Source: Macrostomum lignano (lineage: Eukaryota). From it: DNA of 64,000 nucleotides. Below are positions 37,341-64,000 of the stretch, piece after piece. Both the position numbers and the translations under genes were made by a program. How positions within the stretch are numbered: the first letter of the stretch is position 1; each line of letters opens with the position of its first letter. The notes beneath the pieces are model-generated. The model had not been told where the DNA came from. It ran no database searches and saw only the letters and a list, made by a program, of their open reading frames with translations. The stretch is from NCBI GenBank assembly GCA_002269645.1, contig NIVC01001304.1:186001-250000 (forward strand), in the 5' to 3' direction.

Positions 37341-38569
37341 TTACTTAATTATAAACTATAGCTATTTCTTACAATTTGCTTCTCATATGTGATTTTATGC
37401 ACCATATTTATAATAAAATTCTAGGGGTTATGATTTAAGCATTAAGTCCCTACAGGTGGAGCAGGGAGAAATCCATTATGTAACATCACATGGCCATATA
37501 CTTTGTTGCCTCCACTAGTTATGGAAGTGAAGCAATAATGCCCATAGGCCTACAGCAATTTTCTAAACAAGCAAACAAACAAAAAATAATTATTAGAGCT
37601 TGGCAAGTTTGTACCATAGAATAAAATTACAATGAACACTTGTACACATACAATGTGCATTTAGATGCCAATTATAGCAACAAGTTGAATCTCTTAGCAT
37701 GCATTTACTATTTAATCCTATATTTTGCAGACTATTGATTGAGTAACAATTTACATGTATAACAAAAACAATTGAATAACAATTTACAGCTTTGCAGAAT
37801 CTTAGGATGACAAAGTGTCCTCAAAATTTGGTCACTTCATCATCTAGATTTCTAACAATTTTTTGGTATGACAAAGCATCCAAAAACCATGGTCACTTTG
37901 TCATCTGGATGACAAACTGGTAAGATAACGAAATGTCCAGGAACTAGACAAAATGCATCTAACTGTCCACTGCAATTTTGGAACTTTCTGGTAATCCTTG
38001 GCCTTAACTGTGTGGTCTCTGCAGCTTGAGCAGCAGCACTTTGTATAGTAGCTCAGGGCAGTGGGCCTCTGATTAGATGACATGGCTAGTCAAAGTCGTT
38101 GCCCACATAGCAAGTCAGAAGACAGCATCAGTATACCATTATGGAGAGTGTGGCATTAGTCTCACTGTCTAGACTAATATGCATTCCAAATATTGCATGT
38201 AGCATAGCCACATATGTATTGTCAAGCTGTTTCTCCAAGGTCCTTGTCTCAGTTTTGTATAGTAGTTACAGAAAGTTTATTAGCTATGGATACAGATAGG
38301 CTATAGAAAAATTTTTGAGATATAGCTATAGATATAAATATGGGAAAATTTGGTTATAGTGGAACTGTATTAAACTGATTATATGACAAGGCATTTTATG
38401 CTAACAATATAATACATATTACTCCTGCCTTATACCTAAAATATTTGGGCCCAAGTTTTATCAAGAGTGACATCATCTTAGATTTTAAGACTTTTCTTAT
38501 TTGCTTTGTGTTGCCATTTAGTATAGAAAAAAACAAGCTTCAAAATGCAATGTATTCACTCTATCCTCA

Positions 38570-38710
38570 TCAATCACCCTATCCTCAGCAATCACCCATC
38601 CTCAGCAATCACTCTATCCTAAGCAATCACCCCATCCTCAGCAATCACCCCATCCTCATCAATCACCCCATCCTCATCAATCACCCTATCCTCAGCAATC
38701 ACCCCATCCC
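38570..38710. repeat. 18-bp minisatellite (CACCCCATCCTCAGCAAT); copy at 46660-46800
   Basis: Same family as 39640-40045. Confidence 0.9.
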
Positions 38711-39431
38711 TCTTTGTATACTTAAATTTTATGAACAATTTCTAATAGAGTGGAAGAAAAATGATTTCAAATTTGTGTTATGAATGCAAAAACTACATAA
38801 AAGGAGCAAAAAATTTATGCAAAAATCTTTGTTGGTTATGGAGTTCTCAGTTCTATCAACTTATAATATGAAAAATAAAAAAATTAGGAACAAAACTGGG
38901 TTGTACAATTTTTCTTTTTTCATTGAAAACAATGAAACTTTTTTTTCATTAACTTTGTTAAAAAATGTTTTGAATGAAAAAATTGACTTTACAATTGTAC
39001 CTATTTTATATGAAAAGTCATAATTATTTCCTTAAAAAACAGTAATTCACTTTCTTAGGTCATTTTTTTGAATTTATTGCATTTTTCTTCTAGATTACAG
39101 TGTAAATTTTTTAAATTCAATTTAGTTTCAAATAATTTTACATTTGAAGTACATTTTTATATTAATGATTATAAAATAAGCAAAATATTAACCAATGTGT
39201 GTTTATATTGTTAAGTTCAGTCAAATTGTATTACAAATTGTTTCTTTTTGGCTGTTAGACTGTGTAGTGGTTAGGCCTAGTTGTGCATTTTAATTATTTA
39301 AAATTTTTTAAGGTATTGGGATTAGTAATTGTTAATATGCACCAATTTCAACATTAGATTCTAATAAGACACTTGCTGAATATTTTTATTAATATTAATA
39401 ATATACAAAGGACAATTCTCATTTCCAGAGA

Positions 39432-40211
39432 ATGGTTTGTGTACCCTGCATTGTCATCCCTTTTGTGCTGTGGGTTTTCCACCGCTATCTGCGACCCCTG
39501 CTGGCGCCCTTCCTGCCCAGCTGGATGCTCGGCACCGCCAGCTCTGAGGATTCGGATGGGAAACAGCCTGGGGCCGCCTCTGCTGACTCGACTGCGCCTG
39601 CAAAGGCCAAGGTAAAACTTCTGTGTATTGCATGCTCCACCCCATCCTCAGCATTCACCCCATCCTCAGCAATAACCCCATCCTCAGCAATCACCCCATC
39701 CTCAACAATCACCCCATCCTCAGCATTCACCCAATCCTCAGCATTCACCCCATCCTCAGCATTCACCCCATCCTCAGCATTCACCCATCCTCAGCATTCA
39801 CCCTATCCTCAGCATTCACCCATCCTCAGCATTCACCCTATCCTCAGCATTCACCCCATCCTCAGCATTCACCCATCCTCAGCATTCACCCTATCCTCAG
39901 CATTCACCCATCCTCAGCATTCACCCTATCCTCAGCAATCACCCCATCCTCCGCAATCACCGATCCTCAGCATTCACCCTATCCTCAGCAATCACCCCAT
40001 CCTCCGCAATCACCGATCCTCAGCATTCACCCCATCCTCAGCAAGCATGACTGCATTCCCAATAAAACTTGGCTCAGTCTAAATACGTATGAAGGATCTA
40101 CTAAACCCCCAATATGTTAGTATTAGAAAGCAAATATTTTCCCGAACAGTCCGCAATCTCAATCCGGTAATTTCTGCCTCAATTTCCACGCAGATGTTCT
40201 TCGCTCTCTAA
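39432..40211 (+). CDS. C18orf32: UPF0729 / C18orf32-like small protein, copy 1; exon 39432-39611 plus probable exon 40194-40211
   Basis: MVCVPCIVIPFVLWVFHRYLRPLLAPF matches the family N-terminus (MVCIPCIVIP.LLW...). Acceptor TTTCCAG| 3 nt before the ATG; donor AAG|GTAAAA at 39612. The short last exon (MFFAL*) is tentative. Confidence 0.8.
39640..40045. repeat. 17/18-bp minisatellite (CACCCCATCCTCAGCATT), intronic; copy at 47730-48135
   Basis: Begins ~30 bp after the C18orf32-like donor. Confidence 0.95.
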
Positions 40212-40870
40212 CGATCAATCTCATTAGACATTCCACTGCAACCTGGCTAGAATCTCCTTATCGATGGGTCTCATTCCTGCATAAAATTCCCCAGCTGACT
40301 GCTCGCCCTCGCCCGCCCCTTCGCAGTGCCCGTTCGCCTCTTCGTCCACGGCAGCCGCTGGCTCTGAGAATCCGCACACAAAAAAGACAGAATGAAGCTC
40401 AGTCTGTTCACCTGTGGTAGCATCCTTGACCATCGGTACATGGCAGGTGGAATGCGGATTATTATATTAATATCTGAAAACTGAAGTCTCTGTTGTTGCT
40501 GCTTCATTTTTATTCAAATTAAGTATTTTACGAGTTTTTGTACACTCTTGAGCTGCAATGAGAATATAATTTCATAGAATCCTTAATGATGTACTGCAGA
40601 CGGTCGCGCTTGCTGTGCACAGAAAGTGAAATAAAATGTATCAACCATTTGAAAGATCTGTTATCCAGGCACCCAGTCAGTCTTGGCTTTTTTGTATTCT
40701 TTCTAAGTTTTCATTAGAAATCTACTGCATCACAGTTCAGCTAAATGTTCAATATTGGAAAGCATTGATTGAAATAAGTTTTGCGATTCATTTCAGCTTG
40801 GAGATTGAAGCTGAATTTTGCGGATTGCGGCGCAGCTTCAGACGATTTTTCATAAACTTTCAGCAGCTTC

Positions 40871-42892
40871 ATGGGGCGAAAGAAGATTCAAATTGCCAGG
40901 ATTGAGGATGAGAGAACTCGGCAGGTGAGTGCAACTTGCAGGAATCTCTGCTGGAAATCTCACTGTCTCAAGTATCAATCTTAACTGTCAGATCAGGAAT
41001 CTCACTGTCTCGAGTATCAATCTCACTGTCTCGAGTATCAATCTCACTGTCTCGAGTATCAATCTCACTGTCAGATCATAAATCTCACTGTCTCGAGTAT
41101 CAATCTCACTGTCAAATCAAGAATCTCACTGTCAGATAAGAAATCTCACTGTCTTGAGTATCAATCTCACTGTCAGATCATAAATCTCACTGTCTCGAGT
41201 ATCAATCTCACTGTCAAATCAGGAATCTCACTGTCAGATCAGGAATCTCACTGTCAGATAAGAAATCTCACTGTCTTGAGTATCAATCTCACTGTCAGAT
41301 CATAAATCTCACTGTCTCGAGTATCAATCTCACTGTCAGATCATAAATCTCACTGTCTCGAGTATCAATCTCACTGTCAAATCAGGAATCTCACTGTCAG
41401 ATCAGGAATCTCACTGTCAGATAAGAAATCTCACTGTCTTGAGTATCAATCTCACTGTCAGATCATAAATCTCACTGTCTCGAGTATCAATCTCACTGTC
41501 AGATCATAAATCTCACTGTCTCGAGTATCAATCTCACTGTCAAATCAGGAATCTCGCTGTCAGATCAGGAATCTCACTGTCAGATAAGAAATCTCACTGT
41601 CTTGAGTATCAATCTCACTGTCAGATTAGAAGTCTGTCTCGGGTATCAATCTCACTGTCTCGGGTATCAATCCCACTGTCTTAAGTATCGATCTCACTGT
41701 CATTAGAAGTCTGTCTCGGGTATCAATCTCACTGTCTGCAGATATCAATCTCACTGTCTCGGGTATCAATCCCACTGTCTTGAGTATCAATCTCCGAATA
41801 TCAGCGCGGAAATCTCGCGCTCTCTCAACCCAAACCCTCCAACGTCCCGCCCTCCTCCGCGCCGCCAAATTCAGGTGACCTTCACCAAGCGCAAGTTCGG
41901 CCTAATGAAAAAGGCCTACGAGCTCTCTGTCCTCTGCGACTGCGAGGTGGCGCTGATCGTGTTCAACGGCAACAACCGGCTGCACCAGTACGCCAGCACC
42001 GACATGGACCGCCTGCTGCTGCGCTACACGGACTACAGCTCACCGCACGAGAGCCGCACTAATAAGGACATTATGGAGGTGAGCGTCAATTTCTTCGGCA
42101 GCAGCAGATGCTTAAATGCTATTGCTCGAAGCTGGGTTCCCCATCCCTAAATTCGGTGTAAGTTTCGGGGTATGAAAGTCTATTCGCGATTTTACAGGGT
42201 AATGGGATTGTGTGGGATTCTTGTGTAATTGGGCTGTTACTTGGAATAACTTGGGTATGTGATTTACGTTGGGATTCTGGGGAATGGTTTGTTGTAGCCA
42301 AGGTTGTAGCCTAGTGGTTGGAGCGTCCGACTGAAAGGTCGGGGGTTCGACTCTCAACCTGTGGCGACCCCTTAGTCCTTGAACTGAACAGCCGTACGCA
42401 GCCTTCAGATCGCCGCGCAATAGCTGCGGCTGAGCTGTCGGAGCTTGCACATTAGGGCAGGTGCAATCAATGATTACAGGTGAATTTTTTGGAATTTTCT
42501 ATTGTTGGTGAATGTGATCAGGACACGGATGCCTCCCGCTCTTCCAGTACTTGACCCGCAAGTCCGGCGCCTCCGCCGATGCGCCGCCCGACCAAGAGGA
42601 CTCGCAGCCGTCGCCGACGACGCAGCAACAGCCGCAGCAGCCACGGCAGCAGCCGCTTTGCCAGTCCATCAGGCTGCAGTCTTTGTCGTCTAGCAGCGCA
42701 GCAGCATCGTCCCAGCAGGGGCTGCAGCTGCCGCAGGCACCGCAGATTCTGCAGCTGCAACAGCCGCAGCAGCAGCAACAGCAGCAGCAGCAGCAGCAGC
42801 TGGATCAACAGTATCCAGTTGTGGACTTCCTCACCCAGCTGAAGTCGGAGGGCACCGAGAATGAAGGTGTGATTGTGAGCGGCCCGCTGTGA
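40871..42892 (+). CDS. MEF2: MEF2-family MADS-box transcription factor, copy 1; exons 40871-40924, 41875-42078, 42548-42892 (possible alternative end via donor 42867 to exon 44443-44633)
   Basis: [18 protein letters not shown]|[68 protein letters not shown]|YLTRKSG: complete MADS + MEF2 domains, two phase-0 GT-AG introns, Gln-rich tail. Confidence 0.95.
40945..41795. repeat. Compound 20/21-bp minisatellite (AATCTCACTGTC core) in MEF2 intron 1; copy at 49035-49885
   Basis: Units such as AATCTCACTGTCTCGAGTATC and AATCTCACTGTCAGATCATA in recurring order. Confidence 0.95.
42300..42480 (+). mobile_element. tRNA-derived SINE-like element in MEF2 intron 2; copy at 50390-50570
   Basis: Pol III A box TAGCCTAGTGG (42307) and B box GGTTCGACTCT (42344) with a CCGAC-TGAAAG-GTCGG hairpin between them; no complete cloverleaf; right boundary uncertain. 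Confidence 0.55.
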
Positions 42893-43144
42893 GCCGCTGC
42901 CCCGGCAGCTCATTGCGATGTGCGACTCTTAAATATTTTGCTCACTGTTTCCATTTGTTTTGTACTTTAGCTGTTGGCTTTGCTGCTAATCTCGCCTTAT
43001 ATCTGCCCGGATTTTCTCTCAACAATTATTATCCACCCTTAAACCGCTAACTCGCCCATCTGTCATCATCTCTTTTTTCTGCTTTAATCAGAAGTTTGGT
43101 CTGTTCTCTCTGTTCTTCTCTTCGTTCACCTGTGATTCTCTTTG

Positions 43145-44070
43145 CATCCACCCGTGAGTCTCCCCACATCCACCCGTGAGTCTCCCTGCATCCACCCGTG
43201 AGTCTCCCCACATCCACCCGTGAGTCTCCCCACATCCACCTGTCTCCCTGCATCCACCCGTGAGTCTCCCTGCATCCACCCGTGAGTCTCCCTGCATCCA
43301 CCCGTGAGTCTCCCCACATCCACCCGTGAGTCTCCCCACATCCACCTGTGAGTCTGCCCACATCCACCTGTGAGTCTCCCCACATCCACCTGTGAGTCTC
43401 CCTCACATCCACCTATGAGTCTCCCCACATCCACCTGTGAGTCTCCCCACATCCACCCGTGAGTCTCCCCACATCCACCTGTGAGTCTGCCCACATCCAC
43501 CTGTGAGTCTGCCCACATCCACCTGTGAGTCTCCCTCACATCCACCCGTGAGTCTCCCCACATCCACCTGTGAGTCTGCCCACATCCACCTGTGAGTCTG
43601 CCCACATCCACCTGTGAGTCTCCCTCACATCCACCTATGAGTCTCCCCACATCCACCTGTGAGTCTCACCACATCCACCTGTGAGTCTCCCCACATCCAC
43701 CTGTGAGTCTCCCTCACATCCACCTATGAGTCTCCCCACATCCACCTGTGAGTCTCACCACATCCACCCGTGAGTCTCCCCACATCCACCTGTGAGTCTG
43801 CCCACATCCACCTGTGAGTCTGCCCACATCCACCTGTGAGTCTCCCTCACATCCACCCGTGAGTCTCCCCACATCCACCTGTGAGTCTGCCCACATCCAC
43901 CTGTGAGTCTGCCCACATCCACCTGTGAGTCTCCCTCACATCCACCTATGAGTCTCCCCACATCCACCTGTGAGTCTCACCACATCCACCTGTGAGTCTC
44001 CCCACATCCACCTGTGAGTCTCACCACATCCACCTGTGAGTCTGCCCACATCCACCTGTGAGTCTCCCCA
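43145..44070. repeat. 22-bp minisatellite (CCACATCCACCTGTGAGTCTCC), ~42 copies; copy at 51235-52160
   Basis: Tandem array downstream of MEF2 exon 3. Confidence 0.96.
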
Positions 44071-44714
44071 CATTCGCTCGTCTCCCTGCATTCCTCTGCT
44101 CTCTGTCATTAATACCGCTATCGAGTTAATCGCCACACTACTAAACCTTGCATAACCTGTTACTATCTGCTCATCTAACGGATGCTCATCCGTTCTCACT
44201 AAGGCAAAGAGCTCATGACTTTATTCAGACTGTACAGAAACTGTATTCAATATCCACTGTTGACTTGCTGTGAACCGAATCAGACTGTTGAACACTTAGC
44301 AGTTTATATTTAGCTTTGCTCAAAGCTGCCTAGACCTGACCGAATTTGATTTCCGCCAAAGCTTGTTCATAATGGTTCGTCTTCTATCTTGTACTATTTT
44401 CTCTTTACTAGTAGCAGACTATAAAAAATGTTTTGTTTGCAGATTTCGCGCTGCGCATTCCGGAATGCAAAGGTCGCCCCGTTTGTCTAACATCAATCCG
44501 AACATATTTAAATACATATAATACGTGCTACTCTTATCAAAATGTTACTATTTTATTTTGTTATTCTGCATGCAAAATCAACGGCGCCGCAGCTCTCGCA
44601 GTTGGACCCGCGGTTTTGAATGATGATAATTAAATTTAAAAAAATATTAAAAACTTGTCATTCAATTATCATAATGCTGTTCTTGCTTTGGGGCGACTGG
44701 TCTTTCACACTGCA

Positions 44715-45400
44715 CACCAGCCTGGCACACCTGACCAACCTGGCATACCTGACCAACCTGGCACACCTGACCAACCTGGCACACCTGACCAACTTGACAC
44801 ACCTGACCAACCTGGCATTCCTGACTAACCTGGCACACCTGACCAACCTGGCACACCTGACCAACCTGGCACACCTGACCAACCTGGCACACCTGACCAA
44901 CCTGGCACACCTGACCAACCTGGCACACCTGACCAACCTGGCACACCTGACCAACCTGGCACACCTGACCAACCTGGCACACCTGACCAACCTGGCATTC
45001 CTGACTAACCTGGCACACCTGACTAACCTGACACACCTGGCCATCCTGGCATTCCTGACTAACCTGGCACACCTGACCAACCTGGCATTCCTGACTAACC
45101 TGGCACACCTGACTAACCTGGCACACCTGACCAACTTGACACACCTGGCCATCCTGGCATTCCTGACTAACCTGGCACACCTGACCAACCTGGCACACCT
45201 GACCAACCTGGCACACCTGACCAACCTGGCACACCTGACCAACCTGGCACACCTGACTAACCTGGCACACCTGACCAACTTGACACACCTGGCCATCCTG
45301 GCATTCCTGACTAACCTGGCACACCTGACCAACCTGGCACCCCTAACCAACCTGAAACATCTGACCAACTTGACACACCTAGCTGGCACACCTGACCACA
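44715..45400. repeat. 18-bp minisatellite (ACCTGACCAACCTGGCAC), ~38 copies; copy at 52805-53490
   Basis: Tandem array; gives spurious HLTNLA / QVCQVG ORFs. Confidence 0.96.
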
Positions 45401-45836
45401 CTTGCCACCTTCCTGCCAAACGATCGCAATTAAACTATGCATTTTTGGCTCATGCGGATTGCTTTACTGCTTCCATCAGCGGAAAGTTGCCAAAGATTTG
45501 CCATGAGCCATTTCTGGCCTGACCTGAAGTTTAGCCACCAATGAAAATCAAGGCAACAGCGAATTAGAAAAGCTCCCGTTTAAAAAATAAGTTACCCTTC
45601 ACAAATCTATTTAATGCGTTGTAGACTACACTTTCTACGGGTCTTGTCACTGCCCGAGTGATGTGCTGGTTCTACACCGAATCTTTCGGCTTCCTGCAAT
45701 CTGGCTGTCTGCTCTCACGCTGACCAAATTTCCTCTTTGTATCGGCTGTAGTTCAGGCGCTCTCTTCATGCCCTACAAGGAGGCCACCAGCGTCGGACGC
45801 TTCACATTGGCACTGATACTCCTGCACTGGCTCTGC

Positions 45837-46299
45837 CCCTCTGGTAAATAAACCAGATAACACCACAAGATAATTTGCGAATCTTGTCAGATTCACTACC
45901 GATTTCCTTGTTTGAGGTGCGAAACTGGTGAAACCACCAGATTCGTCGAAAGGTAATTTTAGTGTTATCTGGTTTGACTGTTATCTGGTGAGTTATCTGA
46001 ATTTCACCAGATAACATGGCCCGAATCTTGCTTAGAAATCAGATTACATGACAAGATTCGCCATCAGATAATTTTTTGTTTTCTTGTTTTACTGTTATCT
46101 GGTGAGTTATCTGAATTTCACAGGATAACATAGTGCGAATCTTGTTTGAAAATCAGATAACAGTACAAGATTCGCCACCAGATAATTCTCTGTTATCTTG
46201 GTTGATCGAACCTTGTTTGAATCGGAATTTCACAGGATAACATGGCGTGAATCTTGTTTAAAAAACAGATAACAGTACAAGATTTTAATCAAGATAACT
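45837..46299. mobile_element. Truncated left end of the CMC/EnSpm-like element, cut by the duplication breakpoint
   Basis: Same as 53927-54389 (offset 8090); no matching right TIR before the junction. Confidence 0.85.
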
Positions 46300-47521
46300 T
46301 TTCTCCAAGTTTCTCCAAGTTTCTCCAAGGTCCTTGTCTCAGTTTTGTATAGTAGTTACAGAAAGTTTATTAGCTATGGATACAGATAGGCTATAGAAAA
46401 ATTTTTGAGATATAGCTATAGATATAAATATGGGAAAATTTGGTTATAGTGGAACTGTATTAAACTGATTATATGACAAGGCATTTTATGCTAACAATAT
46501 AATACATATTACTCCTGCCTTATACCTAAAATATTTGGGCCCAAGTTTTATCAAGAGTGACATCATCTTAGATTTTAAGACTTTTCTTATTTGCTTTGTG
46601 TTGCCATTTAGTATAGAAAAAAACAAGCTTCAAAATGCAATGTATTCACTCTATCCTCATCAATCACCCTATCCTCAGCAATCACCCATCCTCAGCAATC
46701 ACTCTATCCTAAGCAATCACCCCATCCTCAGCAATCACCCCATCCTCATCAATCACCCCATCCTCATCAATCACCCTATCCTCAGCAATCACCCCATCCC
46801 TCTTTGTATACTTAAATTTTATGAACAATTTCTAATAGAGTGGAAGAAAAATGATTTCAAATTTGTGTTATGAATGCAAAAACTACATAAAAGGAGCAAA
46901 AAATTTATGCAAAAATCTTTGTTGGTTATGGAGTTCTCAGTTCTATCAACTTATAATATGAAAAATAAAAAAATTAGGAACAAAACTGGGTTGTACAATT
47001 TTTCTTTTTTCATTGAAAACAATGAAACTTTTTTTTCATTAACTTTGTTAAAAAATGTTTTGAATGAAAAAATTGACTTTACAATTGTACCTATTTTATA
47101 TGAAAAGTCATAATTATTTCCTTAAAAAACAGTAATTCACTTTCTTAGGTCATTTTTTTGAATTTATTGCATTTTTCTTCTAGATTACAGTGTAAATTTT
47201 TTAAATTCAATTTAGTTTCAAATAATTTTACATTTGAAGTACATTTTTATATTAATGATTATAAAATAAGCAAAATATTAACCAATGTGTGTTTATATTG
47301 TTAAGTTCAGTCAAATTGTATTACAAATTGTTTCTTTTTGGCTGTTAGACTGTGTAGTGGTTAGGCCTAGTTGTGCATTTTAATTATTTAAAATTTTTTA
47401 AGGTATTGGGATTAGTAATTGTTAATATGCACCAATTTCAACATTAGATTCTAATAAGACACTTGCTGAATATTTTTATTAATATTAATAATATACAAAG
47501 GACAATTCTCATTTCCAGAGA

Positions 47522-48301
47522 ATGGTTTGTGTACCCTGCATTGTCATCCCTTTTGTGCTGTGGGTTTTCCACCGCTATCTGCGACCCCTGCTGGCGCCCT
47601 TCCTGCCCAGCTGGATGCTCGGCACCGCCAGCTCTGAGGATTCGGATGGGAAACAGCCTGGGGCCGCCTCTGCTGACTCGACTGCGCCTGCAAAGGCCAA
47701 GGTAAAACTTCTGTGTATTGCATGCTCCACCCCATCCTCAGCATTCACCCCATCCTCAGCAATAACCCCATCCTCAGCAATCACCCCATCCTCAACAATC
47801 ACCCCATCCTCAGCATTCACCCAATCCTCAGCATTCACCCCATCCTCAGCATTCACCCCATCCTCAGCATTCACCCATCCTCAGCATTCACCCTATCCTC
47901 AGCATTCACCCATCCTCAGCATTCACCCTATCCTCAGCATTCACCCCATCCTCAGCATTCACCCATCCTCAGCATTCACCCTATCCTCAGCATTCACCCA
48001 TCCTCAGCATTCACCCTATCCTCAGCAATCACCCCATCCTCCGCAATCACCGATCCTCAGCATTCACCCTATCCTCAGCAATCACCCCATCCTCCGCAAT
48101 CACCGATCCTCAGCATTCACCCCATCCTCAGCAAGCATGACTGCATTCCCAATAAAACTTGGCTCAGTCTAAATACGTATGAAGGATCTACTAAACCCCC
48201 AATATGTTAGTATTAGAAAGCAAATATTTTCCCGAACAGTCCGCAATCTCAATCCGGTAATTTCTGCCTCAATTTCCACGCAGATGTTCTTCGCTCTCTA
48301 A
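47522..48301 (+). CDS. C18orf32: UPF0729 / C18orf32-like small protein, copy 2 (exons 47522-47701, 48284-48301)
   Basis: Identical translation to copy 1; the putative leader exon (~34.1 kb) is not in the duplicated unit. Confidence 0.75.
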
Positions 48302-48960
48302 CGATCAATCTCATTAGACATTCCACTGCAACCTGGCTAGAATCTCCTTATCGATGGGTCTCATTCCTGCATAAAATTCCCCAGCTGACTGCTCGCCCTC
48401 GCCCGCCCCTTCGCAGTGCCCGTTCGCCTCTTCGTCCACGGCAGCCGCTGGCTCTGAGAATCCGCACACAAAAAAGACAGAATGAAGCTCAGTCTGTTCA
48501 CCTGTGGTAGCATCCTTGACCATCGGTACATGGCAGGTGGAATGCGGATTATTATATTAATATCTGAAAACTGAAGTCTCTGTTGTTGCTGCTTCATTTT
48601 TATTCAAATTAAGTATTTTACGAGTTTTTGTACACTCTTGAGCTGCAATGAGAATATAATTTCATAGAATCCTTAATGATGTACTGCAGACGGTCGCGCT
48701 TGCTGTGCACAGAAAGTGAAATAAAATGTATCAACCATTTGAAAGATCTGTTATCCAGGCACCCAGTCAGTCTTGGCTTTTTTGTATTCTTTCTAAGTTT
48801 TCATTAGAAATCTACTGCATCACAGTTCAGCTAAATGTTCAATATTGGAAAGCATTGATTGAAATAAGTTTTGCGATTCATTTCAGCTTGGAGATTGAAG
48901 CTGAATTTTGCGGATTGCGGCGCAGCTTCAGACGATTTTTCATAAACTTTCAGCAGCTTC

Positions 48961-50982
48961 ATGGGGCGAAAGAAGATTCAAATTGCCAGGATTGAGGATG
49001 AGAGAACTCGGCAGGTGAGTGCAACTTGCAGGAATCTCTGCTGGAAATCTCACTGTCTCAAGTATCAATCTTAACTGTCAGATCAGGAATCTCACTGTCT
49101 CGAGTATCAATCTCACTGTCTCGAGTATCAATCTCACTGTCTCGAGTATCAATCTCACTGTCAGATCATAAATCTCACTGTCTCGAGTATCAATCTCACT
49201 GTCAAATCAAGAATCTCACTGTCAGATAAGAAATCTCACTGTCTTGAGTATCAATCTCACTGTCAGATCATAAATCTCACTGTCTCGAGTATCAATCTCA
49301 CTGTCAAATCAGGAATCTCACTGTCAGATCAGGAATCTCACTGTCAGATAAGAAATCTCACTGTCTTGAGTATCAATCTCACTGTCAGATCATAAATCTC
49401 ACTGTCTCGAGTATCAATCTCACTGTCAGATCATAAATCTCACTGTCTCGAGTATCAATCTCACTGTCAAATCAGGAATCTCACTGTCAGATCAGGAATC
49501 TCACTGTCAGATAAGAAATCTCACTGTCTTGAGTATCAATCTCACTGTCAGATCATAAATCTCACTGTCTCGAGTATCAATCTCACTGTCAGATCATAAA
49601 TCTCACTGTCTCGAGTATCAATCTCACTGTCAAATCAGGAATCTCGCTGTCAGATCAGGAATCTCACTGTCAGATAAGAAATCTCACTGTCTTGAGTATC
49701 AATCTCACTGTCAGATTAGAAGTCTGTCTCGGGTATCAATCTCACTGTCTCGGGTATCAATCCCACTGTCTTAAGTATCGATCTCACTGTCATTAGAAGT
49801 CTGTCTCGGGTATCAATCTCACTGTCTGCAGATATCAATCTCACTGTCTCGGGTATCAATCCCACTGTCTTGAGTATCAATCTCCGAATATCAGCGCGGA
49901 AATCTCGCGCTCTCTCAACCCAAACCCTCCAACGTCCCGCCCTCCTCCGCGCCGCCAAATTCAGGTGACCTTCACCAAGCGCAAGTTCGGCCTAATGAAA
50001 AAGGCCTACGAGCTCTCTGTCCTCTGCGACTGCGAGGTGGCGCTGATCGTGTTCAACGGCAACAACCGGCTGCACCAGTACGCCAGCACCGACATGGACC
50101 GCCTGCTGCTGCGCTACACGGACTACAGCTCACCGCACGAGAGCCGCACTAATAAGGACATTATGGAGGTGAGCGTCAATTTCTTCGGCAGCAGCAGATG
50201 CTTAAATGCTATTGCTCGAAGCTGGGTTCCCCATCCCTAAATTCGGTGTAAGTTTCGGGGTATGAAAGTCTATTCGCGATTTTACAGGGTAATGGGATTG
50301 TGTGGGATTCTTGTGTAATTGGGCTGTTACTTGGAATAACTTGGGTATGTGATTTACGTTGGGATTCTGGGGAATGGTTTGTTGTAGCCAAGGTTGTAGC
50401 CTAGTGGTTGGAGCGTCCGACTGAAAGGTCGGGGGTTCGACTCTCAACCTGTGGCGACCCCTTAGTCCTTGAACTGAACAGCCGTACGCAGCCTTCAGAT
50501 CGCCGCGCAATAGCTGCGGCTGAGCTGTCGGAGCTTGCACATTAGGGCAGGTGCAATCAATGATTACAGGTGAATTTTTTGGAATTTTCTATTGTTGGTG
50601 AATGTGATCAGGACACGGATGCCTCCCGCTCTTCCAGTACTTGACCCGCAAGTCCGGCGCCTCCGCCGATGCGCCGCCCGACCAAGAGGACTCGCAGCCG
50701 TCGCCGACGACGCAGCAACAGCCGCAGCAGCCACGGCAGCAGCCGCTTTGCCAGTCCATCAGGCTGCAGTCTTTGTCGTCTAGCAGCGCAGCAGCATCGT
50801 CCCAGCAGGGGCTGCAGCTGCCGCAGGCACCGCAGATTCTGCAGCTGCAACAGCCGCAGCAGCAGCAACAGCAGCAGCAGCAGCAGCAGCTGGATCAACA
50901 GTATCCAGTTGTGGACTTCCTCACCCAGCTGAAGTCGGAGGGCACCGAGAATGAAGGTGTGATTGTGAGCGGCCCGCTGTGA
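48961..50982 (+). CDS. MEF2: MEF2-family MADS-box transcription factor, copy 2; exons 48961-49014, 49965-50168, 50638-50982
   Basis: Identical translation and splice sites to copy 1 at +8090. Confidence 0.93.
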
Positions 50983-53900
50983 GCCGCTGCCCCGGCAGCT
51001 CATTGCGATGTGCGACTCTTAAATATTTTGCTCACTGTTTCCATTTGTTTTGTACTTTAGCTGTTGGCTTTGCTGCTAATCTCGCCTTATATCTGCCCGG
51101 ATTTTCTCTCAACAATTATTATCCACCCTTAAACCGCTAACTCGCCCATCTGTCATCATCTCTTTTTTCTGCTTTAATCAGAAGTTTGGTCTGTTCTCTC
51201 TGTTCTTCTCTTCGTTCACCTGTGATTCTCTTTGCATCCACCCGTGAGTCTCCCCACATCCACCCGTGAGTCTCCCTGCATCCACCCGTGAGTCTCCCCA
51301 CATCCACCCGTGAGTCTCCCCACATCCACCTGTCTCCCTGCATCCACCCGTGAGTCTCCCTGCATCCACCCGTGAGTCTCCCTGCATCCACCCGTGAGTC
51401 TCCCCACATCCACCCGTGAGTCTCCCCACATCCACCTGTGAGTCTGCCCACATCCACCTGTGAGTCTCCCCACATCCACCTGTGAGTCTCCCTCACATCC
51501 ACCTATGAGTCTCCCCACATCCACCTGTGAGTCTCCCCACATCCACCCGTGAGTCTCCCCACATCCACCTGTGAGTCTGCCCACATCCACCTGTGAGTCT
51601 GCCCACATCCACCTGTGAGTCTCCCTCACATCCACCCGTGAGTCTCCCCACATCCACCTGTGAGTCTGCCCACATCCACCTGTGAGTCTGCCCACATCCA
51701 CCTGTGAGTCTCCCTCACATCCACCTATGAGTCTCCCCACATCCACCTGTGAGTCTCACCACATCCACCTGTGAGTCTCCCCACATCCACCTGTGAGTCT
51801 CCCTCACATCCACCTATGAGTCTCCCCACATCCACCTGTGAGTCTCACCACATCCACCCGTGAGTCTCCCCACATCCACCTGTGAGTCTGCCCACATCCA
51901 CCTGTGAGTCTGCCCACATCCACCTGTGAGTCTCCCTCACATCCACCCGTGAGTCTCCCCACATCCACCTGTGAGTCTGCCCACATCCACCTGTGAGTCT
52001 GCCCACATCCACCTGTGAGTCTCCCTCACATCCACCTATGAGTCTCCCCACATCCACCTGTGAGTCTCACCACATCCACCTGTGAGTCTCCCCACATCCA
52101 CCTGTGAGTCTCACCACATCCACCTGTGAGTCTGCCCACATCCACCTGTGAGTCTCCCCACATTCGCTCGTCTCCCTGCATTCCTCTGCTCTCTGTCATT
52201 AATACCGCTATCGAGTTAATCGCCACACTACTAAACCTTGCATAACCTGTTACTATCTGCTCATCTAACGGATGCTCATCCGTTCTCACTAAGGCAAAGA
52301 GCTCATGACTTTATTCAGACTGTACAGAAACTGTATTCAATATCCACTGTTGACTTGCTGTGAACCGAATCAGACTGTTGAACACTTAGCAGTTTATATT
52401 TAGCTTTGCTCAAAGCTGCCTAGACCTGACCGAATTTGATTTCCGCCAAAGCTTGTTCATAATGGTTCGTCTTCTATCTTGTACTATTTTCTCTTTACTA
52501 GTAGCAGACTATAAAAAATGTTTTGTTTGCAGATTTCGCGCTGCGCATTCCGGAATGCAAAGGTCGCCCCGTTTGTCTAACATCAATCCGAACATATTTA
52601 AATACATATAATACGTGCTACTCTTATCAAAATGTTACTATTTTATTTTGTTATTCTGCATGCAAAATCAACGGCGCCGCAGCTCTCGCAGTTGGACCCG
52701 CGGTTTTGAATGATGATAATTAAATTTAAAAAAATATTAAAAACTTGTCATTCAATTATCATAATGCTGTTCTTGCTTTGGGGCGACTGGTCTTTCACAC
52801 TGCACACCAGCCTGGCACACCTGACCAACCTGGCATACCTGACCAACCTGGCACACCTGACCAACCTGGCACACCTGACCAACTTGACACACCTGACCAA
52901 CCTGGCATTCCTGACTAACCTGGCACACCTGACCAACCTGGCACACCTGACCAACCTGGCACACCTGACCAACCTGGCACACCTGACCAACCTGGCACAC
53001 CTGACCAACCTGGCACACCTGACCAACCTGGCACACCTGACCAACCTGGCACACCTGACCAACCTGGCACACCTGACCAACCTGGCATTCCTGACTAACC
53101 TGGCACACCTGACTAACCTGACACACCTGGCCATCCTGGCATTCCTGACTAACCTGGCACACCTGACCAACCTGGCATTCCTGACTAACCTGGCACACCT
53201 GACTAACCTGGCACACCTGACCAACTTGACACACCTGGCCATCCTGGCATTCCTGACTAACCTGGCACACCTGACCAACCTGGCACACCTGACCAACCTG
53301 GCACACCTGACCAACCTGGCACACCTGACCAACCTGGCACACCTGACTAACCTGGCACACCTGACCAACTTGACACACCTGGCCATCCTGGCATTCCTGA
53401 CTAACCTGGCACACCTGACCAACCTGGCACCCCTAACCAACCTGAAACATCTGACCAACTTGACACACCTAGCTGGCACACCTGACCACACTTGCCACCT
53501 TCCTGCCAAACGATCGCAATTAAACTATGCATTTTTGGCTCATGCGGATTGCTTTACTGCTTCCATCAGCGGAAAGTTGCCAAAGATTTGCCATGAGCCA
53601 TTTCTGGCCTGACCTGAAGTTTAGCCACCAATGAAAATCAAGGCAACAGCGAATTAGAAAAGCTCCCGTTTAAAAAATAAGTTACCCTTCACAAATCTAT
53701 TTAATGCGTTGTAGACTACACTTTCTACGGGTCTTGTCACTGCCCGAGTGATGTGCTGGTTCTACACCGAATCTTTCGGCTTCCTGCAATCTGGCTGTCT
53801 GCTCTCACGCTGACCAAATTTCCTCTTTGTATCGGCTGTAGTTCAGGCGCTCTCTTCATGCCCTACAAGGAGGCCACCAGCGTCGGACGCTTCACATTGG

Positions 53901-54904
53901 CACTGATACTCCTGCACTGGCTCTGCCCCTCTGGTAAATAAACCAGATAACACCACAAGATAATTTGCGAATCTTGTCAGATTCACTACCGATTTCCTTG
54001 TTTGAGGTGCGAAACTGGTGAAACCACCAGATTCGTCGAAAGGTAATTTTAGTGTTATCTGGTTTGACTGTTATCTGGTGAGTTATCTGAATTTCACCAG
54101 ATAACATGGCCCGAATCTTGCTTAGAAATCAGATTACATGACAAGATTCGCCATCAGATAATTTTTTGTTTTCTTGTTTTACTGTTATCTGGTGAGTTAT
54201 CTGAATTTCACAGGATAACATAGTGCGAATCTTGTTTGAAAATCAGATAACAGTACAAGATTCGCCACCAGATAATTCTCTGTTATCTTGGTTGATCGAA
54301 CCTTGTTTGAATCGGAATTTCACAGGATAACATGGCGTGAATCTTGTTTAAAAAACAGATAACAGTACAAGATTTTAATCAAGATAACTGTGTGTTATCT
54401 GGTCTGTAAGAAACCTGTGTGAATCTGAAATTTGCCGGATAACATGATGCGAATCTTGTTTGCAAAGCAGATAATGGAAAAAGATTTCAATCAAGATGCC
54501 TTTGTGTTTTCCGGTCTGTAAGAACCCATTGTGCTTTTCAGCCAGAATTTTTTTCCAGAGTTTCGTGATCCGGGCCCGATTTATTAATTGATTTCCAAGT
54601 GAAGGCTTGGATCAGAATTTTTGGCCCGGAATAGCCCCTCTTTTGCGGAAAATTTGATCCTGCAAAAGTTCGGGAAAGGAAAAGCTGTTCCAGCTGGATT
54701 TATCAAAATTTTTAACCTGAAACAGCTGCTGAATTCTGATTGCAGACCCAAATTTCAGGTTTTCCAAATGAAAATTTTCTGGATGAGATTTTGGGAGTTC
54801 AATCGGAATTCCTCAGCGATCTAGACCAAGTGATCCGGAAAATCCACAGGGATCAGCTCCCATTGACAGGAATCTCAATGAAGTTACGGATAAGACTGGT
54901 CTTC

Positions 54905-55757
54905 CGTCTGTTGTGGCTTAAGGCAGCTGCTAAGCTGACCTGCGATGGATAATCAATCCTCGCTTCTGTTGTGGCTCAAGGCAGCTGCTAAGCTGACCTG
55001 CGATGGATAATCAATCCTCGCTTCTGTTGGGACTCAAGGCAGCTGCTAAGCTGACCTGCGATGGATAATCAATCCTCGCTTCTGTTGTGGCTCAAGGCAG
55101 CTGCTAAGCTGACCTGCGATGGATAATCAATCCTCGCTTCTGTTGTGGCTCAAGGCAGCTGCTAAGCTGACCTGCGATGGATAATCAATCCTCGCTTCTG
55201 TTGTGGCTCAAGGCAGCTGCTAAGCTGACCTGCGATGGATAATCAATCCTCGCTTCTGTTGGGACTCAAGGCAGCTGCTAAGCTGACCTGCGATGGATAA
55301 TCAATCCTCGCTTCTGTTGTGGCTCAAGGCAGCTGCTAAGCTGACCTGCGATGGATAATCAATCCTCGCTTCTGTTGTGGCTCAAGGCAGCTGCTAAGCT
55401 GACCGGCGATGGATAATCAATCCTCGCTTCTGTTGTGGCTCAAGGCAGCTGCTAAGCTGACCTGCGATGGATAATCAATCCTCGCTTCTGTTGTGGCTCA
55501 AGGCAGCTGCTAAGCTGACCTGCGATGGATAATCAATCCTCGCTTCTGTTGTGGCTCAAGGCAGCTGCTAAGCTGACCTGCGATGGATAATCAATCCTCG
55601 CTTCTGTTGTGGCTCAAGGCAGCTGCTAAGCTGACCTGCGATGGATAATCAATCCTCGCTTCTGTTGTGGCTCAAGGCAGCTGCTAAGCTGACCTGCGAT
55701 GGATAATCAATCCTCGCTTCTGTTGGGACTAAAGGCAGCTGCTAAGCTGACCTGCGA
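54905..55757. repeat. 58-bp tandem array (CTGTTGTGGCTCAAGGCAGCTGCTAAGCTGACCTGCGATGGATAATCAATCCTCGCTT), ~14.7 copies, inside the transposon
   Basis: Period 58 measured at 54908/54966; a further partial degenerate copy at ~56170-56225. Confidence 0.96.
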
Positions 55758-57726
55758 GGGGTAAAGTGCCATATATCAGCAAACGCTAGCGCTCGTAATG
55801 TGAGGCCGTGCCCACCCTCCCTGCAGGTGATAGCTTTGTTGGCTCTCCGACAAACTATTGCATTTTTATTGTGCTGGAGAGGTTTGACTCCCAATGGCAT
55901 GTAGTCTGTCGCGGTTACTTAGTGTATCAGATTACCCTATTATCTGGTGCAGCTGGGTGTCTAGATGGAGCTGTGGCATGGTTCCAAAAGCTCCTACTGG
56001 CCCAGTTCTAAGGTAGCCTTTTTTTAAGACAGACGTTATTCTAGCTCTTGCTAGAGCATGCTCCATTGGGTTGTCTAAAGCGTCTGCAGTGTTGGTGTAT
56101 GGCCACCAGCGAGGGATAATGGAACCCCGCTTCAACCGATGAATCAGAGTTGAGCAGTTGACTGAAAATTCTGACCTACGAGGGGTAATCAATCCTCGCG
56201 TCTGTTGTGGCTCAAGGCAGCTGCTTAGAGTAGTCACTTCTATTTGACTATGCGGGTCAATCTAATCCGAGGGGTAATAAAGCCTCGAAATTGCAAGGTG
56301 AATTGATCTGCTTTTCGGAGGCACTGTAGCGTCCGTAATGTGAGGCTGTGCCCATCCTCCGTACAGGTGACAATTGAAAAATTGTTGCGCCCTGATTGTG
56401 TGCGAGAGGTTTGACTTCCACTGGCATGTAGTCTATCACAGCTGCTTAGTGTGTCAACGGGCTGAATGATTCTATCGTCATATTTGACGCTTAGAAGCAT
56501 GAGTCAGCCAACCATATTGTTTGGCACAGCTGGGTGTCTAGACGGAGACTGTGGCATGGTTCCAAATAGCTCTAACTGGCCCAGTATGCAAAGCAGCTTT
56601 CCTATTAAGATAGACGCTAATCCGATTTTTGTCGGTGCATGCTCCATTGGTTTGTCTAAGGCGTTTGCAGTTGCACCAGCCGTAAGCAGATCAAGTCAAG
56701 AGAGTAGTCGTTACAGACTACGAGTGTCGGAAATCTTGTCGAGATTTAATAAATCCTCGAACAAGTCAAAAGAGTAGTCGTTACAGACTACGAGTGTCGG
56801 TAATCTTGTCAGCCACTTTTTCCGGAGGGTGTCACTGCTTCGAACGACGCAGTTGATGACGCCATTGGACGATCGTCCATCGCACTAGCGACATCTGCAA
56901 CGCCAAGTCGGTTGGATATTACCGTTGGCACACGGGATTGCGAAGATAATCATGTAAGAGTTTCCAGCGTAGTCGGCATTTCGTGGACGCAACGAAGCCA
57001 GCGCCGCGCGAGCCGGCGCATCAGATGATACACCATTCACTTTGTCTCCGGTCTACGAGCAGCCGATCAACGAAAGCCAGTTGATTCCGGATGTCGACTA
57101 TGCAACGAATGACAATTCTATCGACGCAGCTGACATTACTAGTGAACAGTCTTACAATCTGGCAATGATTGTCGGCGAACCGTCGCTGTCTGTTAGAGCT
57201 AGACGATCGAGTGTGTATGTACATTACTGTTTCTTTATAACTGTGTATATTTCGGAGAAACTGCCTTCCATCGCCATTTAATTTAACTTTAATAATGCAG
57301 AGTCGTTCCATTGCGCCGGCATATAATGCAAGCCCCCGTCAGTGGTCTCATTAATCGCCTTCCGTGCGCGCGACCCGATCTTTCAAACGTCTGGCTCACG
57401 CGTCGACTGCCATCAGAGTCGCGTCCGAGTACAGCAGGTCCGACCTGCGACTCAGCACCAGATCGCAGCAGATCATCAATTCAGTAGTATCAATTGGTAT
57501 CCACAGTATAAGTAGGTCTACTTATAACTGAACCCCCAAAATCAGACGTATGCCACGCTGTTCTCCATAAGTTTCCGTTCCTGTTGAGCTACTGTTTAGT
57601 TTGTATAAGGCGCTTACAAATGACACCCCGCTGTTAAATAGATGCTACTCATAAAATCTTGAAGCACCAACTTTTTATACGCTTCTTTGCTGCGAAATTT
57701 GATGTCAATGCCTTCTGGATTTTTTC

Positions 57727-58065
57727 GCATGAATTACCCAACTGTTACCTGGTCAGCGAATCCTGTTTGCCAGACAAGATAACAAACAAGATAACAAACA
57801 GGATAACACGATGTTTTCCTGCAGGATTCGCATGAATTACCCGACTGTTACCTGGTCAGCGAATCCTGTTTGCCAGACAAGATAACAAACAAGATAACAA
57901 ACAGGATAACACGATGTTTTCCTGCAGGATTCGCATGAATTACCCGACTGTTACCTGGTCAGCGAATCCTGTTTGCCAGACAGGATAACAAACAAGATAA
58001 CAAACAGGATAGCACGATGTTTTCCTGCAGGATTCGCATGAATTACCCGACTGTTACCTGGTCAA
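57727..58065. repeat. 103-bp subterminal tandem repeat, ~3.3 copies
   Basis: GCATGAATTACC recurs at 57727, 57830, 57933 and 58036. Confidence 0.92.
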
Positions 58066-63607: not shown

Positions 63608-64000
63608 ATCCTGCTCAGAATCTCACCCAAAGAGCTCATAACTCTGCTCAGAATCTCACCCAATGATTTCATAATCCTGCTCAGAATCTCACCCAATGAT
63701 TTCATGATTCTGCTCAGAATCTCACCCAATGATTTCATAATCCTGCTCAGAATCTCACCCATTGATTTCATAATTCTGCTCAGAATCTCACCCAATGATT
63801 TCATAATTCTGCTCAGAATCTCACCCAATGATTTCATAATTCTGCTCAGAATCTCACCCAATGAGTTCACAATCCTGCTCAGAATCTCACCCAATGAGTT
63901 ATTCTGCTCAGAATCTCACCCAATGATTTCATATAATTCTGCTCAGAATCTCACCCAATGATTTCATATAATTCTGCTCAGAATCTCACCCAATGATTTC
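63608..64000. repeat. 33-bp minisatellite (AATTCTGCTCAGAATCTCACCCAATGATTTCAT), runs off the window
   Basis: 11-codon periodicity in the ORF track; ~12 units. Confidence 0.95.

Follow-up and report, generated by a model that had tools for sequence, protein, structure and literature searches.

Two copies of a MEF2 gene stand head to tail in the draft genome of the flatworm Macrostomum lignano, and the question that they raise is whether the genome itself carries a duplication at this locus or whether one of the copies was made during assembly, and, if the duplication is real, how it came about. The sequence that we examined is a stretch of 64 kb (NIVC01001304.1:186001-250000, hereafter the window) from the Mlig_3_7 draft, GCA_002269645.1, and the features discussed below are collected in Table 1. 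M. lignano is a neopolyploid, transgenesis-capable animal, the DV1 line's karyotype is known to be unstable, and the DNA that was sequenced came from pooled worms.

Table 1. Features of the duplicated locus, with positions counted from the first base of the window.
Feature	Position	Strand	Details
Native single TTTCTCCAAG at left breakpoint	38230-38239	+	Template of the junction insertion; sequence read; same site in L001
Duplication unit, copy 1 (8,070 bp)	38230-46299	+	100% identical to 46320-54389; counterpart L001 7250-15504
DUF4512 gene, copy 1 (83 aa)	39429-40395	+	Coding exons 39429/39432-39611 and 40327-40392 plus stop; GCA_002269645.1 gene calls
MEF2 gene, copy 1 (200 aa)	40871-42892	+	Exons 40871-40924, 41875-42078, 42548-42892; splice sites read
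Truncated left end of transposon in copy 1 (468 bp)	45832-46299	+	Terminal repeat motif at 45838; array 45954-46284 (Tandem Repeats Finder)
Junction insertion (20 bp)	46300-46319	+	TTTCTCCAAG twice more in direct orientation, copied from the unit's first 10 bp
Duplication unit, copy 2 (8,070 bp)	46320-54389	+	Unbroken into native right flank; L001 aligns through 54389 into the flank
DUF4512 gene, copy 2	47519-48485	+	Copy of gene 39429-40395
MEF2 gene, copy 2	48961-50982	+	Identical to copy 1
Non-autonomous DNA transposon, complete (~4.3 kb)	53922-58229		48-nt terminal inverted repeats 53922-53969 and 58182-58229
Small hairpin-forming palindrome AGATAAC-TGTGT-GTTATCT	54382-54400	+	Sequence read; right breakpoint after first loop base

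The two units do not differ at a single position: a string comparison on the same strand matched 8,070 of 8,070 bases, with 0 differences. A sequence-only reading of the window had proposed identical 8.07-kb tandem units with a constant offset of 8,090 across the minisatellites, and both proposals were borne out, the former by this pairwise comparison and the latter by Tandem Repeats Finder, which found each array of copy 1 again 8,090 bp further on in copy 2 (18-mers at 38556, 39638 and 44716, a 21-mer at 40956, a 22-mer at 43127, a 114-mer at 45954 and (GCA)n at 42751). At this offset the longest exact self-match covers 8,071 bp (38229-46299 versus 46319-54389), the additional base, a G at 38229, being a chance match to the last base of the 10-mer found at the junction. 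Tandem repeats make up 42% of the unit (about 3.4 kb), and the two units are the only large repeat pair that a filtered self-BLAST recovered from the window.

Complete DUF4512 and MEF2 genes, preceded by 1.2 kb from upstream, are present in both copies; copy 1 also includes 3.4 kb from downstream of the genes and, at its end, a transposon's first 468 bp. The presence of a whole MEF2 gene in each unit, as suggested earlier, was confirmed by three exons that encode a 200-aa product (P0121) identical to PAA69656.1/PAA69658.1 in GenBank, where Mlig030141.g1 and.g3 are the existing annotations of the two copies. What had been overlooked is that each unit also has, upstream of MEF2, a complete DUF4512 gene; its protein (P0123) matches Pfam PF14975 at 29 bits (cut-off 27). 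A tRNA-like stretch in MEF2 intron 2 was unsupported by ARAGORN or Rfam.

The DV1 genome contains three paralogous subgenome copies of the locus, namely the window, L001 (NIVC01002821.1 in the same assembly) and L002, a third and more diverged paralog, and both L001 and L002 are single-copy. L001 is collinear with the window on both sides and holds one unit and one copy of TTTCTCCAAG, the 10-mer with which the unit begins; both breakpoints are uninterrupted, and at the right one ATAACT runs directly into GTGTGTTATC. The ancestral arrangement is the single-copy one, and it is still visible in L001. The flanks of the window and L001 diverge by 0.2-0.36%, and since SNPs and array lengths differ throughout, L001 is a separate paralog or allele and not the window haplotype minus the duplication. 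No minisatellite differs in length between the two copies, whereas nearly every one differs between the window and L001, a pattern that argues for a young duplication. The doubling of MEF2 dosage that had been proposed was overstated, because with three paralogous copies of the locus the change is from 3 to 4, in addition to which we found a second MEF2 paralogue family (P0039).

The seam between the units has an ordered structure. The 10-mer TTTCTCCAAG occurs at only four sites in the window, once at 38230 and then at 46300, 46310 and 46320, and the sequence of 46300-46319 is TTTCTCCAAGTTTCTCCAAG, in full agreement with the earlier description of a triple 10-mer and 20 bp of new sequence. Microhomology at the original breakpoints amounts to 0 nt, and the slip-back steps proposed below would match by at most 1 nt (G). 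Local alignment of 600 bp around each breakpoint revealed no homology between them (score 16; shuffles averaged 17.3 and reached at most 28). The junction is a blunt join without microhomology to which 20 bp were added, copied twice from the adjacent 10 bases. Unequal crossing-over (NAHR) is ruled out because the breakpoints share no repeats, and so is repeat-induced misassembly, because sites without similarity or microhomology have been brought together; the junction joins two unrelated sequences and is therefore not a repeat-induced misjoin. The right end of copy 2 lacks the 10-mer, which rules out a target-site duplication or the integration of a mobile unit.

The right breakpoint, between 54389 and 54390, falls 468 bp inside the transposon, the left end of which is at 53922-53928. 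The sequence-only reading had stated that a transposon was cut here, and the element found between the inverted repeats agrees with this: the terminal repeats are 92% complementary, and the element is present in L001 and absent at the exact site in L002. The truncated end in copy 1 stops at the right breakpoint, within the 112-114-bp subterminal repeats of the element. By eye, no transposase was recognised among its ORFs of at least 90 aa, and the only one of its ORFs put through Pfam, at 58017-58589 and overlapping its right end, gave no match. A DNA fold predicts a 7-bp stem for the palindrome at the breakpoint, with the whole 81-nt region folding no better than shuffles (z = -1.0), and the hairpin is only a possible break site. 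Alternative transposition, which like NAHR can yield a tandem product with a transposon at one breakpoint, is ruled out by the position of the break inside the element rather than at its terminus; unlike the products of either process, the breakpoints here lack repeats.

The two-unit structure also appears in a second annotation. An older gene model in UniProt, A0A1I8HRV6 (P0122), has the order DUF4512-MEF2-DUF4512-MEF2 with the allele of the window; all of its exons map exactly on the window, and one of its introns (42875-47518) crosses the junction. Its accession series and model style differ from those of the BOX15 (Mlig_3_7) annotation, and it therefore probably derives from the ML2 assembly. 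The ML2 assembly was built with a different algorithm but from the same PacBio reads (Wudarski 2017), so that the model is not independent at the level of the reads. Exact-protein look-ups with both 32-aa ORFs that span the junction and the two adjoining ORFs returned no independent record, a look-up of A0A1I8HRV6 for a contig of the other assembly gave no record, and a search for RNA-derived support with the MEF2-to-DUF4512 splice-junction peptide matched only the DUF4512 protein of this contig.

We considered the possibility that the genome contains a single unit, and that the second copy and the seam stem from the layout or consensus step of Canu, local reassembly by Pilon, merging by SSPACE or aberrant reads. 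Mlig_3_7 was assembled from PacBio CLR reads with Canu and then passed through Pilon and SSPACE, and in this draft only 64% of the bases were called error-free by REAPR (Wudarski 2017); the draft is error-prone as well as redundant. Furthermore, blocks with four copies in Mlig_3_7 mostly show three-fold read coverage and are hence erroneously expanded (Zadesenets et al., 2023), and the MEF2/DUF4512 block has four copies when the duplication is counted. The perfect identity, even across 3.4 kb of minisatellites, is what would be expected if one set of reads underlies both copies; the same assembly has the locus in single copy as L001; and no independent sequence with the junction was found in the searches described above. 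The unit, at about 8 kb, is also of the order of a CLR read in length.

However, an assembler needs overlapping reads to join the end of the unit to its start, and these two sites share no sequence. An ordered, templated insert of 20 bp is expected from no known step of an assembler or polisher, in line with the earlier argument that a simple assembly duplication is unlikely to make such a junction. In chimeric PacBio inserts the fragments joined are random, and an adapter that is missed yields a copy in inverted rather than direct orientation. False duplications are marked by gaps and haplotype-specific k-mers (Ko et al., 2022, PMC9516828). The present case resembles them in that a whole gene lies beside its copy in a draft that was built from long reads without phasing and whose genome is highly redundant, but the junction is novel and structured. 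The window contains no N characters, the seam is gapless and the copies show neither haplotype nor error differences, and the two marks of a false duplication that would be visible in the sequence are thus absent. The same two-unit structure in A0A1I8HRV6, a different annotation probably made on the differently assembled ML2, likewise speaks against an artefact, which we consider unlikely, although it is the alternative to be taken most seriously.

The junction could also be real yet belong to a circular extrachromosomal molecule 8,090 bp in size, or be confined to a minority of the pooled DV1 animals or cells, with the assembler having threaded the reads in question into the chromosomal contig as a tandem copy. 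Closure of a circle by end joining gives the same junction, pooled worms from a line with an unstable karyotype could harbor such variants, and the un-duplicated L001 coexists in the assembly. Yet a chromosome-like coverage would be needed to enter the consensus of what are probably two assemblies, and the differences in SNPs and array lengths throughout L001 mark it as a separate paralog or allele; this scenario appears improbable to us. Least credible is an older tandem duplication, the copies of which were later homogenized by gene conversion. Conversion does occur at the locus, as indicated by L001 and L002 being 99.1% identical over 42801-43126 and about 90-92% identical around it, but here it would have to have run over the entire 8,070 bp, ended precisely at both edges, and erased all differences, those in the minisatellites included. 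Such a complete conversion is in practice indistinguishable from a recent duplication, and less parsimonious.

We therefore favor, with a probability of roughly two in three, a real and very young head-to-tail tandem duplication of 8,070 bp in one of the three subgenome copies of the DV1 line, formed by repair of the polymerase-theta or template-switch type. The sequence-only reading had called the duplication real and very recent, and this has become the better-supported interpretation through the junction of unrelated sequences, the lack of gaps and differences, the intact site in L001 and the gene model A0A1I8HRV6; what tempers it is the error-prone draft and the sharing of reads with ML2. 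One hypothesis is that breakage or the collapse of a replication fork generated a DNA end 468 bp inside the transposon, among its subterminal GATAAC/GTTATC repeats, which are rich in hairpins, and that this end became connected to the sister chromatid at a position 8,070 bp upstream. During joining, the polymerase may have used TTTCTCCAAG for priming and copied it two times in succession, slipping between the two rounds, after which the newly made 10 nt would themselves supply the homology for annealing in register. Overall, this would amount to synthesis-dependent end joining of the polymerase-theta type, and a replicative template switch would give the same product. As a consequence, each genome set would have four gene copies of the locus where it had three, and transcription could read through from MEF2 copy 1 into DUF4512 copy 2.

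Templated insertions are a hallmark of polymerase-theta end joining, and tandem duplications that depend on polq-1 in C. elegans are mostly 10-20 kb in size (PMC7368036). The flatworm duplication is similar to those in C. elegans brc-1/brd-1, tnsl-1 and helq-1 mutants and to the BRCA1-type class of about 10 kb in tumors in its head-to-tail orientation and 10-kb size class, in having breakpoints without long homology and in an insertion copied from immediately adjoining sequence, its 20 bp being two exact copies of the adjacent 10-mer. It departs from these cases as a variant of the germline or lineage in a flatworm whose repair is presumably proficient, with a putative role for POLQ, and in its junction, where microhomology is 0 nt and the direct copy is iterated (x2) as opposed to a single templated stretch. 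Its non-recurrent tandem nature, the short templated insertion and a breakpoint in hairpin-prone repeats that could stall a fork are also reminiscent of FoSTeS/MMBIR. Junctions formed by FoSTeS/MMBIR usually carry 2-5 nt of microhomology per switch. The flatworm junction, in contrast, has 0 or at most 1 nt, and it is single and simple, with no complex rearrangement.

The tandem is probably an ordinary gene duplication and not a new kind of biological system. If it is real, it represents a newborn gene duplication caught before divergence, with the pre-duplication site kept in a paralogous subgenome and with a junction that records how the join was made. It would then be useful for studies of the origin of tandem duplicates in a recently polyploid flatworm and of the dosage effects of a MEF2 paralogue. 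Most affected are the users of the Mlig_3_7 annotation, for whom the extra copy in Mlig030141.g1/.g3 and in the two DUF4512 genes is either genuine or a spurious gain of genes. A far more speculative and, in our opinion, improbable extension is that a general process operates in this neopolyploid, whereby breaks in the hairpin-rich subterminal repeats of non-autonomous DNA transposons and their repair by polymerase-theta-type joining would continually spawn kb-scale tandem duplications, so that, as the genome rediploidizes, regulator dosage, that of MEF2 included, would be re-tuned across the three subgenomes. Under this broader hypothesis, the DV1 line might even have acquired the copy described here while in laboratory culture.

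The duplicated MEF2 gene encodes a short member of its family. PF12347, which is present in vertebrate MEF2, was not detected in the 200-aa flatworm protein, which has a glutamine-rich tail and, unlike vertebrate MEF2, no counterpart to the C-terminal transactivation region. The N-terminal MADS box matches PF00319 over residues 10-57 (E = 6.8e-25) and is followed directly by the MEF2 domain, residues 1-92 aligning end to end with the crystal constructs of MEF2A/B/C/D (E ~1e-44), and over 106 aa the protein shares 74% of its residues with human MEF2D.

A scan of all offsets in the window returned a longest exact self-match of 8,071 bp at an offset of 8,090 (38229-46299 against 46319-54389), and string comparison showed that the two 8,070-bp units within it are identical at every base. 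Tandem Repeats Finder placed the same arrays at +8,090 in both copies, and such arrays make up about 42% of the unit. A sequence-only reading of this DNA had proposed identical units with a constant 8,090 offset running through the minisatellites and had named a pairwise alignment as the check; run base by base, this gave 0 differences in 8,070 bp, and all particulars of the observation hold. Filtered self-BLAST identified no further large repeat pair in the window, and N bases are absent from all of its 64 kb.

Coordinates of the duplicated units and of other features, in window numbering
Feature	Position	Description
Unit, copy 1	38230-46299	8,070 bp
Unit, copy 2	46320-54389	8,070 bp
Minisatellite arrays, copy 1 (Tandem Repeats Finder)	38556, 39638	18-mers
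	40956	21-mer
	42751	coding (GCA)n
	43127	22-mer
	44716	18-mer
	45954	114-mer
DUF4512 gene	39429-40395 (copy 1), 47519-48485 (copy 2)	complete, 83 aa, upstream of MEF2
MEF2 gene exons, copy 1	40871-40924, 41875-42078, 42548-42892	canonical GT-AG introns
4.3-kb element	53922-58229	cut by the right breakpoint
Terminal inverted repeats of the 4.3-kb element	53922-53969, 58182-58229	48 nt, 92% complementary
Left 468 bp of the 4.3-kb element in copy 1	45832-46299
58-bp minisatellite in the 4.3-kb element	54907-55764	14.8 copies, 98% matches
Insertion absent from L001	29801-33008	3,208 bp
ORF (+)	1189-2679	496 aa
tRNA-like stretch, MEF2 intron 2	42290-42390, 50380-50480
Further long minisatellite arrays	3900-7800, 10750-13480, 59370-59860, 63600-64000	20-bp, 46-bp and other periods

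The unit extends from 1.2 kb upstream of the DUF4512 gene to 3.4 kb past the stop codon of a MADS-box gene with three exons. The spliced product of the latter has 200 aa and shows 97% identity to a Macrostomum lignano protein and, according to the cluster listing, 100% identity to P0121, the protein deposited in GenBank as PAA69656.1 and PAA69658.1 (BOX15_Mlig030141g1 and g3). The genes for these two entries share one contig of 317,232 bp, NIVC01001304.1 of assembly GCA_002269645.1 (Mlig_3_7), of which the window covers positions 186001-250000; the loci fetched from this contig are identical to the window sequence at every base. Judged by the end-to-end alignment of residues 1-92 with the MADS+MEF2 crystal constructs of MEF2A-D (E ~1e-44), the 74% identity to human MEF2D over 106 residues and the SRF-TF MADS box found by Pfam, the predicted protein is a bona fide MEF2-type factor. 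It is short, with a glutamine-rich tail in place of the vertebrate C-terminal region. Both annotated gene copies (Mlig030141 g1 and g3) are already on record in GenBank, and the event itself, a probable tandem segmental duplication of recent origin whose junction points to end joining, is of a well-known kind; our literature search found no publication describing the duplication of the MEF2 unit.

Two further contigs of the assembly encode P0001, the closest relative of the MEF2 protein. One of these, NIVC01002821.1 (L001), contains one unit, and to either side of it L001 and the window are collinear. At its left breakpoint, ...GTCAAGCTG is followed by a single copy of the 10-mer TTTCTCCAAG and then by GTCC..., and its right breakpoint is uninterrupted, with ...CATGATAACT running directly into GTGTGTTATCTGG.... 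The other contig, NIVC01000738.1 (L002), is a more diverged paralog and is likewise single-copy. The ancestral arrangement was, as these contigs show, single-copy. The DV1 genome has been described as consisting of three paralogous subgenomes, with which the window and the two paralogous contigs agree (PMC10733133).

The copies are separated by 20 bp, TTTCTCCAAGTTTCTCCAAG, which together with the opening 10 bases of copy 2 form (TTTCTCCAAG)3 at 46300-46329, corresponding to 232,300-232,329 of the contig. Copy 1 begins with a single copy of the same 10-mer (38230-38239), which elsewhere in the 64 kb occurs only in this triple; this confirms the earlier description of a triple 10-mer junction with 20 bp of new sequence. 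The join reads ...AATCAAGATAACT, two copies of TTTCTCCAAG and TTTCTCCAAGGTCC..., and junction-specific 31-mers lie within, for example, TAATCAAGATAACTTTTCTCCAAGTTTCTCCAAGTTTCTCCAAGGTCCTT. The sole new sequence at the join consists of two direct copies of the 10 bases downstream. Between the 600 bp around each breakpoint no similarity was detected (local score 16, shuffle mean 17.3), and microhomology at the join amounts to 0 nt. These data show a non-homologous, blunt junction with a direct templated insertion of 2 x 10 bp. Unequal crossing-over is ruled out because the breakpoints lack homology, and a repeat-induced false overlap is ruled out because there is no similarity between the two sites.

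At the right breakpoint, the unit ends 468 bp into a 4.3-kb element, which is present in L001 and absent from L002 at precisely that site; copy 1 has just the left end of this element. The inverted repeats and the empty site support the earlier suggestion that this breakpoint cuts a transposon. No transposase was seen by eye in the element's ORFs of at least 90 aa, and Pfam, applied to the 58017-58589 ORF only (which overlaps the right end), gave no match. The break falls within 112-114-bp subterminal repeats rich in GATAAC/GTTATC, in the loop of a palindrome with a 7-bp stem (AGATAAC-T/GTGT-GTTATCT, the slash marking the break). The stem was predicted by folding, and the region around the palindrome was not significantly structured as a whole. 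Alternative transposition, which uses the element termini, does not fit a break that is internal to the element.

A DNA end may have arisen inside the hairpin-prone repeats of the transposon and joined the sister chromatid at a point 8,070 bp upstream. The polymerase would then have copied TTTCTCCAAG, dissociated, re-primed on a G match of at most 1 nt and recopied it, with in-register annealing via the newly made 10 nt as the last step. Such a scheme would correspond to the synthesis-dependent microhomology-mediated end joining attributed to polymerase theta. C. elegans forms tandem duplications, mostly of 10-20 kb, in a polq-1-dependent manner, and the hallmark of the polymerase theta pathway is the templated insertion (PMC7368036). 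A replicative template switch (FoSTeS/MMBIR) would yield the same product, and sequence alone does not separate the two.

We favor the hypothesis that the units represent a real chromosomal tandem duplication, with a probability of about 0.68. Mlig_3_7 is a Canu 1.4 assembly of PacBio CLR reads with subsequent Pilon polishing and SSPACE scaffolding; only 64% of its bases are error-free according to REAPR, and its redundancy is large (PMC5730564). Furthermore, the majority of its four-copy blocks have three-fold read coverage (Zadesenets et al., PMC10733133), and the MEF2 block is four-copy once the duplication is counted. An error-prone and redundant draft of this kind could contain an assembly or read artefact, which we nevertheless consider unlikely here. 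To join unit end to unit start, an assembler needs reads overlapping there, and since the two sites share no sequence, any such reads must contain the junction itself. What stands at the seam is a templated insert in ordered form, and neither a gap nor abruptly ending reads nor junk. Two hallmarks of false duplications that are visible in sequence (PMC9516828) are both missing, as no gap separates the copies and they show no haplotype or error differences.

Another argument against an artefact is provided by the UniProt gene model A0A1I8HRV6 (P0122, 521 aa), which has the order DUF4512-MEF2-DUF4512-MEF2 and the window allele. All of its exons have exact matches in the window, where one of its introns (42875-47518) crosses the junction. 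The accession series and model style are unlike those of the BOX15 annotation, and the model presumably derives from the earlier ML2 assembly. ML2 was made from the same PacBio reads as Mlig_3_7 with a different algorithm (PMC5730564), and if the model comes from it, a glitch specific to assembler, polisher or scaffolder is unlikely, though a problem at the read level could still underlie the model. Exact look-ups of junction ORFs and a splice-junction peptide search found no independent sequence with the junction. That the junction is real and resides on a circle or in a minority variant seems quite improbable. The earlier proposal of a real and very recent duplication gains from the structured seam, the complete identity and the two-unit gene model, and loses from the quality of the source assembly. 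As the draft annotation is widely used, the duplication is a concrete point to verify in it.

Outside the unit, substitutions distinguish the window from L001 at a level of 0.36% (left flank) and 0.22% (right flank). The differences are mainly transitions, and 1-bp indels are almost absent, which argues that both contigs are well polished. Nearly all minisatellites differ in length between the window and L001 (+246, +204, -106, -41 and steps of ~18-23 bp), and none differ between copy 1 and copy 2. Given 0 substitutions in 8,070 bp, the copies would be at least ~10 times younger than the window-L001 split, or else not independent sequences at all; an old duplication with copies homogenised by conversion is highly improbable.

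The divergence from L001 is a mosaic, with 0.1-0.5% in the flanks and unit edges and 1.5-2.5% in the unit centre (~39.0-44.7 kb). L001 and L002 are 99.1% identical at 42801-43126 (MEF2 exon 3 and 3' UTR) and ~90-92% identical around it, and in this segment each differs by ~5% from the window. This pattern suggests gene conversion between subgenome paralogs, which would explain why L001 and L002 encode the same protein.

Because the genes are complete in each unit and are preceded there by an identical 1.2-kb upstream segment, both copies are probably expressed. The predicted gene dosage of the MEF2 paralogue is raised from three to four copies per genome set, and a second MEF2 family of more canonical type (P0039) exists in M. 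lignano, so that the claimed doubling of MEF2 dosage was overstated. If real, the duplication would be of modest interest as a newborn duplicate in a transgenic model flatworm in which the empty site is still preserved. In A0A1I8HRV6, DUF4512 exon 1 is followed by a small exon at 40600-40623 and by MEF2 exons (window 39414-42874 and 47519-50910), with an internal donor of MEF2 exon 3 (42874) spliced into the DUF4512 gene of copy 2, a splice that requires the tandem arrangement. The model hints that DUF4512 and MEF2 may be co-transcribed (operon-like or as precursor RNA) and that transcription may read through the junction.

Several other features of the window were observed. The 3,208-bp insertion is bounded by terminal inverted repeats of ~24 nt (CCCAGTAAAAAAGGGTAGTCGGAA...) that match perfectly, shows an apparent target duplication of 2 bp (AG) and lacks ORFs of 100 aa or longer; these traits suggest a non-autonomous DNA transposon whose movement postdates the split between the window and L001. 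The termini of the 4.3-kb element start CCC...GGG, as in this insertion, and the two may belong to one superfamily. Comparison of the 4.3-kb element with the empty site in L002 (14930-14960) gave an ambiguous target duplication of 0-3 bp, possibly 2-bp GC. Among the window and the fetched loci, its copies are confined to the one at 53922-58229, the truncated duplicate in copy 1 and the L001 counterpart, and its internal 58-bp minisatellite has four units more than in L001. In MEF2 intron 2, a stretch (...TAGCCTAGTGGTTGGAGCGTCCGACTGAAAGGTCGGGGGTTCGACTCTC...) resembles by eye the head of a tRNA-derived SINE, which neither ARAGORN nor Rfam recognised. The 496-aa ORF, in repeat-rich and GC-rich DNA, matches the Pfam family "Decapeptide repeat region" (E = 5e-42) and, weakly, Lamprin, and could be a repetitive secreted-protein gene or merely a translated tandem repeat. 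The GC content of the window ranges from 31% to 61%, with strong local swings in GC and GC skew. Simple and tandem repeats constitute 15% of the M. lignano genome (PMC5730564), a share with which the long minisatellite arrays in the window are consistent.
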